Below are positions 2,572 through 6,356 of a stretch of 6,356 nucleotides of DNA, piece by piece. The notes below the pieces were generated by a model. The model was not told where the DNA came from. It saw only the letters and a list, made by a program, of their open reading frames with translations, and did no database searches. The translations under genes and the position numbers were made by a program. How positions within the stretch are numbered: the first letter of the stretch is position 1; every line of letters begins with the position of its first letter. Origin of the DNA: Bugula neritina (taxonomy: Eukaryota; Animalia; Bryozoa); contig CAXIUT010000070.1 of NCBI GenBank assembly GCA_964035545.1, positions 1-6,356 on the forward strand, in the 5' to 3' direction.

Positions 2572-3422
2572 ATGAATACCTCATTTCCCTGTGTCAATAC
2601 TTCACCACTAAACACATCTAAAACAAAATAAACTCATCTCTTCTCAAAAGGACGTCGATTTCTACCCATTCGTGCTCCAAAGTATCATCTTATTAAACTA
2701 AGTTGTTCTCAATCATCTTATGATTTATCAAAAACCATGTTTACTTCATCAATTCAACATAAAACAAGTATAATAGGTCGAGATCAACGTTTCAAAACAA
2801 ATGCTACCATCTCTCCTTCACCGAATGTCTACCATCATCAAAGTTTTATCGAGCGAAATCGTTCATAAACCAGAGGAAATTCATTTAGTCATTAGCCGAA
2901 GTTGATTATCAGAGATACTAAGGCTAAATATCCAGGTCCTAACGCTTATGAATCAAAATACAACCCGTAGAAGAAGTTGTCCTATACTATGAGACATAAA
3001 TTCAATTAAATTGATAAAAAACCTGTATCATTGATGTTGATGTAGAAAGTTGGACCTGGGCAGTATCATATAGCTAGTTATCAGGCTTTGGCGAAACCTG
3101 GGCAAATTAGTTCTAAATACAATAATCCGAAATATGCAGTTATGGGCAAAACTCAAAGGTTTAAACCTAAAGCTGATTAAACTATTAGTCCTGGTCCTCA
3201 TACAGGTAATTACTAGATAAAAATAGGTGGAAGATTTAGAACTGAAAGTGACCAACCTAACTATACATTTGGGTATTCTAAGAAGGTGGCAAGTTATATA
3301 AGGAAGACAGGGACACCTGGTCCTGGAACATAGTAGTTATTATGTTAGATAGTTAAAAGTTTTCATAGTTTTCCTAGTTGAAAAACGGACTGCCTTGTTC
3401 AAGAATAGTTAGGTAGGAATGA
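2572..3422 (+). CDS. SHIPPO-repeat (sperm-tail PG-rich, ODF3/STPG-like) protein, about 255 aa after removing 4 introns (2682-2702, 3025-3045, 3206-3226, 3333-3352)
   Basis: ATG at 2572 follows an A-rich leader. Translation with TAA/TAG as sense gives MNTSFPCVNTSPLNTSKTKETHLFSKGRRF..., with repeated PG motifs SPSPNVY, YPGPNAY, VGPGQY, SPGPHT and TPGPGTY, each near an aromatic-x-(F/M)-(G/S/R) segment. The last Tyr is only restored by splicing 3333-3352. Ends TGA TGA at 3420-3425. Confidence 0.9.
2682..2702 (+). other. Spliceosomal intron, 21 nt
   Basis: gtatcatcttattaaactaag. Splicing gives RAPNCSQSSYDL. It is frame-neutral, so it is inferred from consensus and size only. Confidence 0.7.
3025..3045 (+). 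other. Spliceosomal intron, 21 nt
   Basis: gtatcattgatgttgatgtag. Splicing gives DKKPKVGPGQY. Frame-neutral. Confidence 0.75.
3206..3226 (+). other. Spliceosomal intron, 21 nt
   Basis: gtaattactagataaaaatag in a CAG|GT...AG|GT context. Frame-neutral. Confidence 0.7.
3333..3352 (+). other. Spliceosomal intron, 20 nt
   Basis: gtagttattatgttagatag. Splicing rebuilds TAT to give PGPGTY and the following KFSEFS motif. Confidence 0.85.
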
Positions 3423-3483
3423 TGACTGCTATCGATCATTTATCTATATCTAATTCTATTTATTTTGTAATAATAAGCGCCCA

Positions 3484-4176
3484 ATGAATAGATAGTAACT
3501 TGTTTTGGTTGTCTGTCGTACTAATATAACGTCGACAGCTCTTGAACCGCTGCAACTCATCATTCCGACCTTGTAAATGACCTCTCCGCTTACTATGTAT
3601 ACTTCTAGTGGTGATCAGGTGAGAGGATCTGATTTGTATTCGTAGTTGGCATAGGCATTAGTCAAAGACGGTCATTGCTATTTGTCTTAGACTTTGAAAA
3701 ATGTGCTTAATTCAAGGAAAAAGCAACGATTTCGAGTGTGTGTGCTGGGAGGGACGGAGTTGAGTTGGGATGTGGTGTTGTAGTATAAAAGAAGGTAGAT
3801 ACTAATTGATACTGCTGGAACAAGTTAGATTCTTAACCAGGTATCTTATATAACTGGTGGAGTATCACGTAAAGTGACAGCTACGAACATAATTAAATAC
3901 TTTTTGGTTGATTTTAGCATGTCTTCGTAGATCAGAAAATTCTTTGTAAACAAAAGAGACAACACCATTGAATTCCATTTACAGTCATAGTGCTGTCCCA
4001 ATAAAATAGCTTCATCTTTCTTTGTTTGTTCTACTTGTATGCAAACATATTGCAACTAACACGCCAGAGATACTAAAAAATGCAATAACTGCTAAAAAAC
4101 ATTCGATCCCAAATGGAAAGAAGCCAACTAGCTATAGATACCTTTGGTAGTTGAAAATTCAAAAGCATAAAGCTGA
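3484..4176 (+). CDS. TFB4: TFIIH core subunit Tfb4/p34 (GTF2H3-like), 230 aa, apparently intronless
   Basis: 231 codons from ATG to TGA with 16 in-frame TAA/TAG. ILIDTAG...ILNQVSYITGG resembles Tfb4 IPID...LQQAxxITGG. IEFHLQSECCPNK...FVCSTCMQTYC...KCNNCEKTF resembles the C-terminal zinc finger VDFRASCFCH...FVCSVCLSIFC...CxxC..F. Confidence 0.88.
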
Positions 4177-4298
4177 TCAATCATATTCCATTATAAGCAA
4201 TACTCATTATTTTATCATAATTTTTGACTTATTTTTACCAATTTGATTTTTAAAAGCAAATTAGATATCAGAGATATATATTTAATCGTGATAATAGC

Positions 4299-4532
4299 AT
4301 GAATAGCCTTCGACTTGGAGTATCGCAGTAGATCTTGCCTTACTCTCAGCAGGAAATATTGGAATCGGATTACAGGCTGAACAACTTCGTACTTGGTACT
4401 CTTGGCAATGCAGGTAAGGGACTTCTAATTGGTGCTGTAGCTTCTCTTTTCTTTATCCGTAAGCAACCCATTGTCTTCTACAGTGTTGGTTTTGGAGTTG
4501 GATTGTCAGTTTTTCATGAAATAGTTAAATGA
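4299..4532 (+). CDS. MIC10: MICOS complex subunit Mic10 (MINOS1-like), 77 aa
   Basis: ATG at 4299 reads through one TAG into the supplied 4335-4532 ORF. Two Gly-rich hydrophobic helices (AGKGLLIGAVASLFF and IVFYSVGFGVGLS, a GxGxG motif) are joined by a short basic loop (IRKQP), which is the Mic10 hairpin signature. Confidence 0.85.
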
Positions 4533-4733
4533 TAGTCTATTAATCTAAAAAAAGTTGTATTATCTGGATCATCTCTATCGATATCAGTTTGGTAAATAAT
4601 CTGCTAGTTGAATAAAACTAGTATCTGTTCAATGTTATTTAGTTTTTTATCTATTTTGTGTTGTTTTAATGATGAGTAAAGATGATATTTTTTGTTATTA
4701 TTGATATGATTGTTTATGATATAACTGGAGGGA

Positions 4734-5112
4734 TCATTATCCGACTTGTCTTTCTATTTCTTAAAGTTGTTCTCTAATATTTTTCAAAAAGTTTTGAAAG
4801 TTTTATTTCTAGGTGTTCAGTTGTTCAAGTTGACTCTTGATTCTGCTATTTTCACTTTTATGATGAGCTAAATGTCTCTTCCTGAATATTTGTATTTATA
4901 CAGTTATTAGTGAATTCTGTCCAATTCGGTGGTCAGAGTACGTCTTACGTCTGAGTTCTTAGCATCAAAAGCTTTCTAGAAGGAATCTTTTGCCTGCCTC
5001 AAGGCTTCTGTTTCTCGTTTGTAGGTCTTGATATTGGTGCTAAGGTTGAATAGTTCTTTCTTTGTATAGAGAGTAGTACCTCGACTGTTGATAATCTGTT
5101 CTTGAGTGACAT
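4734..5112 (-). CDS. Conserved small ciliate coiled-coil protein of unknown function, 112 aa, 2 introns (5079-5060, 4901-4882)
   Basis: Spliced product: MSLKNRLSTVEKELFNLSTNIKTYKRETEALRQAKDSFEKAFDAKNSDVRRTLTTELDRIHEELKRHLAHHKSENSRIKSQLEQLNTEKENFQNFLKNIREQLEEIERQVGE-stop. Both 20-nt introns are needed to keep this frame. It resembles, from memory, a ciliate family with DVRKTLTNELxRVEEEMKRHFAHQKAENSRLQQQI. An in-frame upstream ATG at 5178 exists but looks less likely. Confidence 0.85.
4882..4901 (-). other. Spliceosomal intron, 20 nt
   Basis: gtataaatacaaatattcag on the minus strand. It joins RIHEEL to KRHLAH. Confidence 0.88.
5060..5079 (-). other. Spliceosomal intron, 20 nt
   Basis: gtactactctctatacaaag on the minus strand. 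Without splicing, the frame hits TGA shortly downstream. Confidence 0.82.
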
Positions 5113-5250
5113 TTATTGAAGTTATATAATCAAGTCAAAGATATCATCTTATTGCTAATCATCAAAACAAACAATCATCAAATAAACAAAGAATAAATAT
5201 CAATTGAATATCACAATCAATAAATCAAAACACTATCATAATCCTTTATT

Positions 5251-6172
5251 TCATTTATGACTGACAGAATGTTTCCAATGGTTGCTATCAGGAACAGCCA
5301 TATCAGCTGAATGCGTCCGATTTAATCCATTATTTTTAATTTATTTAACTTTGACTAACACCTTCAAAACCTACTGAGCAGCATTGGCCAATACTCCAGG
5401 CATCTATCGCTAATAATCGATATCTATGATAATCTCAATAAATACTTCTTATTCTCGGTAAATCATCCATGATCTAATTGGCCATCTACCCGTATTTCCT
5501 AATTTGCTAGGAATATTCATTGGGCATATTGGTAGCTTTCTATGCCAAACTGAGAGTTCTTTTTAGTTATGTCAGCCATGTGCCTAATTTAGATTGTCCT
5601 AATTCGCTACTAATTTTAAAAAACAGGGAATTGATATTACTATACAATTTGAATTTATTTTGCATGGCTACGATAGGTTCTGTAAGTTTTGAAAACCTAT
5701 CGAATTTTTCTCTATAATTTTTATAGTAATTTTATAACTATAAGTACAATTTGGTTTTTTATTTATGTATCTATTAGTTAAATCTGGCAACGATATTAGA
5801 TATTTCTTATTATATTTGAAATTTGATTGTATTGATATGATTTTCTATGGAATTGAAATGCTGTTCTTTTTATTCTTGCCATTTTAGTAATCCTTCGACT
5901 CCTTTTACTGTTACCATCTCTTTGTATATTACGTTTGCTGATTTTTTTTATCTTTATATACGGGTGCAGAGCTACTAGATACCTCTTGATAGTTAGACGA
6001 CGTTTAGTTCATGTCCGTAGTGACGTTATTTGTAGCGATAGCTGTTGCGGCATTATTAGCAGAAGAGAGGCCAGCCTTAGCAGCGTGGGTCGATGCAGAG
6101 ATAGGTGAGGTTGAGTTTTGGGTGTTCTGGGCAGCGTAGGGGAAGCCGATTGATGAGTGAGTTTTAAAACAT
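5251..6172 (-). CDS. B-box-like zinc finger plus coiled-coil protein, about 299 aa, 1 intron (5445-5424)
   Basis: ATG at 6172. The N-terminus RCPEHPKLNLTYLCIDPRCEGWPLFCEECRNSYRYKERHYGH fits C-x2-H-x8-C-x4-C-x6-C-x2-C-x9-H-x2-H and is followed by a long helical region. The frame is TGA-free until a TGA lying inside a 22-nt GTA...TAG intron. Splicing extends it to TGA at 5253-5251. Confidence 0.82.
5424..5445 (-). other. Spliceosomal intron, 22 nt
   Basis: gtatttattgagattatcatag on the minus strand. It contains the only in-frame TGA, and removing it extends the ORF by about 57 codons. Confidence 0.78.
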
Positions 6173-6245: not shown

Positions 6246-6356
6246 GGGTTGGGGTTGGGGTTGGGGTTGGGGTTGGGGTTGGGGTTGGGGTTGGGGTTGG
6301 GGTTGGGGGTTGGGGTTGGGGTTGGGGTTGGGGTTGGGGTTGGGGTTGGGGTTGGG
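6246..6356 (+). repeat. Right telomere, (TTGGGG)n
   Basis: Tandem TTGGGG to the window end, with one G5 variant at 6305-6309. It is the reverse complement of the left telomere. Confidence 0.99.

Follow-up and report, generated by a model that had tools for sequence, protein, structure and literature searches.

The reading of both UAA and UAG as Glu is known from peritrich ciliates: it has been reported in peritrichs/Sessilida (PMC10553269, PMC11687900, PMC10089648, PMC4967479), and the peritrich code (NCBI table 30; Campanella, Carchesium and other Sessilida) combines it with UGA as the only stop and an otherwise standard table. Several other codes share part of this pattern: i) table 6 (Tetrahymena, Paramecium, Oxytricha) has TAA and TAG as sense codons and TGA as the only stop, and Tetrahymena also carries G4T2 telomeres, but the reassigned amino acid is Gln; ii) the code of Oligohymenophorea sp. 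PL0344 (PMC10553269) has UAG as Glu and UGA as stop in an oligohymenophorean-type organism, but UAA as Lys; iii) the Blastocrithidia code (table 31) also reads UAR as Glu, but belongs to a trypanosomatid in which UGA is Trp and UAA also stops; iv) the Mesodinium code (table 29), again of a ciliate, reassigned both UAR codons together, but to Tyr.

The window, i.e., the whole 6,356-nt stretch that was analyzed (contig CAXIUT010000070.1 of the Bugula neritina assembly GCA_964035545.1), carries C4A2 repeats at its 5' end ((CCCCAA)n, positions 1-88, the C-rich strand) and G4T2 repeats at its 3' end ((GGGGTT)n, positions 6246-6356), both read directly and both on one molecule. Since G4T2 telomeres at both ends indicate a ciliate, the window is a complete two-telomere ciliate macronuclear chromosome of 6.4 kb with five genes. 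Judging from its sequence, this telomere-capped mini-chromosome is very probably decoded as in table 30, with UAA and UAG as Glu and UGA as the only stop. Its likeness to the peritrich code thus extends to both reassigned codons, the single stop, the standard remainder and the ciliate host, while it differs in three respects: TAR codons are the majority among its Glu codons, the chromosome is a two-telomere molecule of only 6.4 kb, and its host group is one that we infer. From the Blastocrithidia code it is set apart by UGA stops, by Trp encoded by TGG only and by the ciliate-type telomeres.

The AT-rich left arm (89-2571, 18-28% GC) yielded no detectable gene: its TGA-free run lengths were not above those of Markov simulations (P=0.52), blastn and tblastx against all related loci found no similarity, and tRNA and Rfam scans gave no match. 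The Rfam scan found no rRNA in the window.

The five genes occupy 2572-6172 and sum to 994 codons, with 31 in-frame TAA and 32 in-frame TAG, under models that assume TGA as the sole stop and four GT..AG introns of 20-22 nt. These models bear out the preliminary description, which had claimed five genes with in-frame TAA or TAG, TGA ends and TGG for Trp. Gene A (SHIPPO/PG-rich-repeat-like; plus strand, 2572-3422; exons 2572-3332 and 3353-3422) has 276 codons, including five TAA and seven TAG, and ends in TGA at 3420-3422; excision of its 20-nt intron (3333-3352) restores a PGPGTY motif and the frame holding TAG 3366-3368, and the frame downstream of the intron agrees with that of a relative, L001 (S-E-F-S-E-L-K-N-G-L). 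Gene B (tentatively Tfb4/p34-like; plus strand, 3484-4176) has 230 codons, five of them TAA and 11 TAG, with its TGA at 4174-4176. Gene C, a Mic10/DUF543-like small membrane protein (plus strand, 4299-4532), is 77 codons long with a single TAG (codon 11) and TGA at 4530-4532. On the minus strand, gene D, a DUF7491-like coiled-coil protein (4734-5112; exons 5112-5080, 5059-4902 and 4881-4734, separated by two 20-nt introns, 5079-5060 and 4901-4882), has 112 codons (five TAA and two TAG) and TGA at 4736-4734; gene E (5251-6172; exons 6172-5446 and 5423-5251, with a 22-nt intron, 5445-5424) encodes a B-box-like Cys/His N-terminus plus a coiled coil in 299 codons (16 TAA and 11 TAG), with TGA at 5253-5251.

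Because TAR codons break the proteins up into stretches of 19-78 residues, Pfam and PDB matches for the genes of the window were only marginal. A 44-residue stop-free piece of gene A matched Pfam SHIPPO-rpt (PF07004) at E=0.004 (18.6 bits; cut-off 20 bits), and PGP..Y motifs are seen in its sequence; a PDB search gave no match. For gene B, the one piece with a match was the C-terminal Zn finger of the L001 orthologue, which hit Pfam Tfb4 (PF03850) at E=0.025 (model positions 225-273 of 273) and GTF2H3 in the PDB at E=1.4; the N-terminal and middle pieces found nothing in Pfam or PDB, even when longer stop-free pieces from relatives and a profile of four sequences were used, and the AlphaFold model built from one sequence was unusable (pLDDT 52). 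The names SHIPPO (gene A) and Tfb4 (gene B) are weakly supported by these sequence matches. Gene C matched Pfam DUF543/Mic10 (PF04418) at E=4.4e-5 (23.7 bits against a cut-off of 24.1 bits), gene D matched Pfam DUF7491 at E=0.0018 on the L001 exon, and a gene E profile run against 1.84 billion representative proteins returned 29 matches, nearly all of them unnamed fragments.

Searches of public assemblies and metagenomes recovered orthologues of each of the five genes. These share 47-87% amino-acid identity with the window's proteins and come from at least eight uncultured relatives, one of which has all five on a single contig. Gene A has an orthologue in L001 (~56% identity), gene B in L001 (50%) and L017 (47%), and gene C in P0001 (76%); gene D orthologues share 72-87% identity and a 20-nt intron at a conserved position, while gene E has orthologues in all eight of eight relatives (54-70% identity).

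Tallied separately against eight relatives, TAA was paired with Glu 87 times in 110 pairs (Asp 12, Gln 5, Asn 2, and Lys, Thr, Arg and Gly once each), and TAG with Glu 70 times (Asp 13, Gln 3, Lys 3, Ser 3). The Glu share of the partners was thus ~79% for TAA and ~71% for TAG, with Asp at 11-13%, much as for the window's own GAA codons (87% Glu). When each site was counted as one observation, the log10 likelihood for TAA was -16.8 under Glu and -24.8 under Gln, and that for TAG was -22.3 under Glu, -28.1 under Asp and -30.6 under Gln, i.e., Glu was favored over Gln by ~10^8 for each codon (10^8.3 for TAG). Calibration against L001 placed the window's GAR codons opposite Glu at 24 of 32 sites and its CAR codons opposite Gln at 21 of 32. 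Among the relatives TAA, TAG, GAA and GAG interchange at the same sites; as these relatives share the code, the comparison leans on their GAR codons. At five TAR sites of gene E, each of the seven relatives in that comparison has Glu. The TAG of gene C (codon 11) stands opposite Asp three times and opposite TAA once, and a minority of TAR sites, in weakly conserved stretches of gene B, stand opposite non-acidic residues. For the remaining codons the top partner was the standard residue wherever sites sufficed, those of ACG (four sites) and GCG (one site) being too few. These alignments support the reading of TAA and TAG, each on its own, as a codon that behaves as Glu.

The usual ciliate code (table 6), in which TAA and TAG are Gln, is exceedingly improbable here. 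Gln is the commonest ciliate reassignment, G4T2 telomeres would suit a Tetrahymena- or Paramecium-like organism, and Gln does stand opposite some TAR sites (8 of 209 non-TAR partners); yet the likelihoods above disfavor it for each codon, Gln aligns with the window's CAR rather than its TAR codons, and if TAR were Gln, the Glu content of gene E would drop to 4%, compared with 11-14% in the orthologues. Under the Glu reading, by comparison, GAR plus TAR amount to 11.4-14.0% of gene E whichever taxon is taken, while the fraction of these codons that are TAR runs from 6% to 69%, the highest value being that of the window; over all five genes of the window, 63 Glu codons are TAR and 34 are GAR (65% TAR). 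The preliminary description, which had proposed Glu rather than the usual Gln, was correct; the UAR=Glu code itself is already known from peritrich ciliates and is therefore not new. Its Tfb4-like codon counts were exact (5 GAR, 6 CAR and 16 TAR per 230 codons), and of those for the SHIPPO-like gene the 4 GAR and 9 CAR stand, while TAR numbers 12 in 276 codons in place of the 10 in ~255 it had given.

Nor do the tallies leave more than a minute probability for the split code of PL0344, with UAA as Lys and UAG as Glu. PL0344 is an oligohymenophorean in which UAG is Glu (PMC10553269), and for UAG the result here is the same; however, Lys is opposite TAA in one of 110 pairs, TAA and TAG substitute for one another at the same sites, and introns are 20-22 nt here against a median of 57 nt in PL0344. 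Three further readings were tried and rejected: Tyr (table 29) has zero partners at the window's TAR sites, Asp is disfavored relative to Glu by 10^5.8 for TAG, and UGA as Trp (table 31) is contradicted by TGA being the terminator of every gene and TGG the Trp codon. Pseudogene or noncoding readings were likewise rejected; all 63 of 63 TAR codons are read through in frame, and with eight independent taxa this excludes chance.

Individual sites pointed the same way. In the coiled-coil gene D, Glu had been placed in homologues at TAG 4978-4976, TAA-TAA 4909-4904 and TAG 4811-4809, which are codons 39, 62-63 and 88 on the minus strand: the first is GAA or GAG in four relatives, the pair is GAA GAA in the nearest relative and TAA or TAG in the others, and the third is GAA or GAG in two relatives and TAA in two. 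The TAG at 3366-3368, assigned earlier to an SEF motif, forms codon 259 in the SHIPPO-like gene and is in frame only when the intron is removed; L001 reads S-E-F-S-E-L there, with its two Glu at 3366-3368 and 3375-3377. A deep check was confined to the Rab11 gene of the relatives, which is not a gene of the window: TAA or TAG occurs at the Glu of the motifs N-E-F, G-V-E-F and DTAGQE, every one of which solved Rab11 structures show as Glu, and the invariant Glu of DTAGQE is TAA in one relative.

TGA terminates five of the five genes, and all alignable orthologue ends are TGA at identical positions; it never occurs in frame, and Trp codons are TGG in six of six cases (90% opposite Trp in relatives). 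Thus TGA is the sole terminator seen, in a small sample of five genes and their orthologues. That sample size is one point for a context-dependent code, in which TAA and TAG would be Glu within genes but stops for some of them, as in Blastocrithidia (UAA) or Condylostoma-type ciliates; another is the TAA-TGA at the end of gene D, which taken alone is readable as a tandem stop. Against it, besides the conserved TGA ends, the last sense codon of gene D is TAA in the window and TAG in L001, while three relatives have GAR there, with TGA next in all. We consider context-dependent termination very unlikely.

With UAA and UAG as Glu throughout, decoding would by analogy rely on suppressor tRNAs derived from tRNA-Glu, with anticodons UUA and CUA, and on an eRF1 that may recognize UGA alone. 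A change in the GTS motif of eRF1 is reported for Carchesium (PMC10089648). ARAGORN found no tRNA genes in the window or in the related loci scanned, and Rfam scans of these were likewise empty.

The source is most likely a peritrich, or else an oligohymenophorean close to the peritrichs, as we infer from the G4T2 telomeres, the conserved 20-nt introns and the taxonomic range known for the code. In the surveyed literature, the combination of UAR read as Glu and UGA as sole stop is reported from peritrichs only (PMC10553269, PMC11687900). Peritrich introns are short with a narrow length distribution (PMC13685798), and the telomeres and the narrow, tiny introns of the window are compatible with that group. 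A non-peritrich source, i.e., an independent lineage with the same reassignment, has several points in its favor. Cluster look-ups and a profile search brought up no named homologue of gene E from any annotated ciliate, and the known peritrich transcriptome runs SRR1768423 and SRR1768437 were absent among the samples looked up. Moreover, oligohymenophorean chromosomes are seldom as small as 6.4 kb. Together with its relatives, at least eight of them and all uncultured, the window could represent either a ciliate lineage that acquired UAR as Glu independently, outside the sampled peritrichs, or an unsampled deep peritrich branch; we regard this as unlikely. If it is true, then either way at least one member uses former stop codons as its main Glu codons and has very small multi-gene macronuclear chromosomes.

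Both this contig and a considerable number of environmental sequences related to it need translation under table 30. In public data the genes of these organisms are called in fragments; for example, ~20 distinct Rab11 gene-call clusters stop exactly at a TAR-encoded Glu. Beyond annotation, the data offer a clean natural case of four-way synonymous exchange among GAA, GAG, TAA and TAG, and the spread in TAR share across related taxa should be useful for studying how a reassigned codon spreads after its capture.

Gene models in the window were built with TGA as the sole stop in translation and with four GT..AG introns (20, 20, 20 and 22 nt) spliced out, at 3333-3352 in gene A, 5060-5079 and 4882-4901 in gene D and 5424-5445 in gene E, all of them AT-rich and of the form GTA...AG. 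The five genes so defined are A (SHIPPO-like; 2572-3422, plus strand, 276 codons), B (Tfb4-like; 3484-4176, plus, 230 codons), C (Mic10/DUF543-like; 4299-4532, plus, 77 codons), D (coiled-coil; 5112-4734, minus, 112 codons) and E (B-box-like with a coiled coil; 6172-5251, minus, 299 codons). Their 994 codons include 31 in-frame TAA and 32 in-frame TAG (together TAR), alongside 34 GAR (GAA/GAG), 32 CAR (Gln) and 89 AAR (Lys) codons. All five terminate at TGA, and Trp is TGG at 6/6 Trp codons. Every coordinate cited in the preliminary description was correct on these models and its codon counts for gene B were reproduced exactly, while gene A holds 12 TAR in 276 codons as against the 10 in about 255 counted earlier.

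Relatives were sought with stop-free pieces of the window proteins as queries. A 66-residue piece of gene C recovered one protein (76% identity), and the contigs coding it include the 61.7-kb Logan contig L001 and the NCBI contig L002. On L001 each of the five window genes has an orthologue (50-82% identity), and a stop-free piece of the gene E orthologue there recovered eight further fragmentary gene calls, whose contigs, with one JGI metagenome scan, make up loci L006-L018. The relatives, whose sequences were assembled either from metagenomes (Tara Oceans, JGI and others; ENA) or by Logan from SRA runs, represent at least eight distinct taxa of 26-46% GC, and in-frame TAA and TAG are present in all their loci.

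The preliminary description had proposed that TAA and TAG encode glutamate, not the usual ciliate glutamine. Window proteins with X at each TAR codon were locally aligned to the relatives, and the codons were then read back. Against L001 alone, TAA was opposite E 15, D 3, Q 2, T 1, K 1 and TAR 7 times, and TAG opposite E 14, D 4, I 1, A 1, K 1, W 1 and TAR 7 times. Under BLOSUM62 conditional probabilities, these partners favored Glu over Gln by 6.2 (TAA), 6.7 (TAG) and 12.9 (combined) log10 units, over Asp by 9.9 and over Lys by 18.7. For calibration, window GAR codons were opposite E at 24/32 sites and CAR codons opposite Q at 21/32. Over eight relatives the partners were E 87, D 12 and Q 5 for TAA and E 70, D 13 and Q 3 for TAG; when each site was counted once, by the relatives' majority residue, E still exceeded Q by ~8 log10 units for each codon. 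In gene E, five TAR sites were Glu in 7/7 relatives compared, and at many other TAR sites GAA, GAG, TAA and TAG swap freely among relatives. The in-frame use of TAA and TAG is confirmed, and the reading of both as Glu is supported.

Several independent cross-checks were made. In gene E of the window, L001, L006-L008, L011, L014 and L015, GAR and TAR together form 11.4-14.0% of codons in every taxon, and the TAR share of Glu codons ranges from 6% to 69%, the window being highest; reading TAR as any residue but Glu would leave window gene E at 4% Glu. The TAR share does not simply track GC (gene E of L006: 28% GC, 29% TAR; window: 34% GC, 69% TAR). For genes C, D and E, the TGA stops of the relatives coincide in position with those of the window. 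The TAA preceding the TGA of gene D corresponds to TAG in L001 and to GAR in three further relatives, so this TAA is read as sense and does not form a tandem stop. In Rab11 of the relatives, TAA encodes the Glu of WDTAGQE (L011) and TAG stands at the Glu of N-E-F and of G-V-E-F (L008), three positions that are all Glu in the solved Rab11A and RABA1a structures. Among public Rab11 gene calls (P0010-P0043), about twenty distinct 90%-identity clusters end exactly at ...DITRASSF, with a conserved Glu next. The clade is therefore diverse, and gene calling with the standard code systematically misreads it, cutting short many of its environmental sequences. When all codons were checked, no reassignment besides TAR emerged.

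The code pattern of the window is that of NCBI table 30, and the window is therefore a new instance of an already known code, not a new code. Other codes each failed on a tested feature: i) table 6 (TAR as Gln) and table 29 (Tyr), TAR being mostly opposite Glu, seldom opposite Gln and never opposite Tyr; ii) the split code of Oligohymenophorea sp. PL0344, in which UAA is Lys (PMC10553269), TAA being mostly opposite Glu; iii) table 31 (UGA as Trp), since TGA ends genes and Trp is TGG. By analogy with other reassigned codes, decoding would rely on suppressor tRNAs derived from tRNA-Glu, with the anticodons UUA and CUA, and on an eRF1 restricted to UGA. None of this machinery was seen, and no tRNA gene was found in the window or in any related locus scanned.

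The gene identities given in the preliminary description proved weaker than implied. In gene A, PGP..Y repeats are present but the SHIPPO match is below threshold, gene C scores just below the DUF543/Mic10 cut-off, and gene D matches DUF7491 weakly. The Tfb4 match of gene B is confined to a C-terminal zinc-finger piece (E=0.025), beyond which all further attempts gave no support. Gene E combines a B-box-like Cys/His pattern with a coiled coil and appears restricted to its lineage: when 1.84 billion representative proteins were searched with a profile of it, 29 matched, nearly all of them unnamed fragments and none bearing an organism name.

The window begins with (CCCCAA)n (1-88) and ends with (GGGGTT)n (6246-6356), which is how a complete macronuclear chromosome of a ciliate with G4T2 telomeres is organized. 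Every recognizable gene lies within 2572-6172 (29-39% GC). The remaining AT-rich arm (89-2571; 18-28% GC) spans 2.5 kb, or 39% of the chromosome; coding signal, RNA genes and similarity to any relative were all looked for there and none was found, and the whole 6356-base window gave no tRNA gene (ARAGORN) and no Rfam match. The arm may serve as a spacer or replication origin, or it may hold fast-evolving orphan genes. Gene order is kept among relatives but is not contiguous: C and D are separated by a Rab11 gene, and D and E by a protein kinase (spans of L007, L008 and L011; L001), and between B and C of L001 stands an ORF of roughly 2300 codons (L001 intervening spans: 2569-9468 and 10291-10900). 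The window has none of the three, and L017 has a B-C-D-E neighborhood like the window's. The five genes occupy a two-telomere molecule of just 6.4 kb, while the relatives' copies sit on contigs of 22 to 62 kb without a telomere nearby, and the window's taxon may therefore have unusually small macronuclear chromosomes. A second, distinct relative occurs in an SRA run shared with L001's taxon (L019; SRR23403440) and again in a metagenome of Tara Oceans (L020; SAMEA2623562), so that these samples contain several clade members, some of them marine.

G4T2 telomeres are compatible with oligohymenophoreans; phyllopharyngeans have C4A3 telomeres. The 20-nt introns keep position and length among relatives (exactly 20 nt and identically placed for the second gene D intron in L001, L008, L011 and L017, with a 20-nt gap between aligned exons in a fifth, L007), and peritrich introns are reported to be short and narrowly distributed in length (PMC13685798). 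In the literature examined, UAR as Glu with a UGA stop is reported for peritrichs/Sessilida only. Given these telomere, intron and code-distribution hints, a peritrich origin of the window is probable, and an independent, non-peritrich lineage that came to the same code is an improbable source. The finding matters for correct annotation of this clade, whose public gene calls are shortened under the standard code, for the extreme degree to which former stop codons serve as Glu codons, and for the residual chance of a lineage outside the peritrichs.
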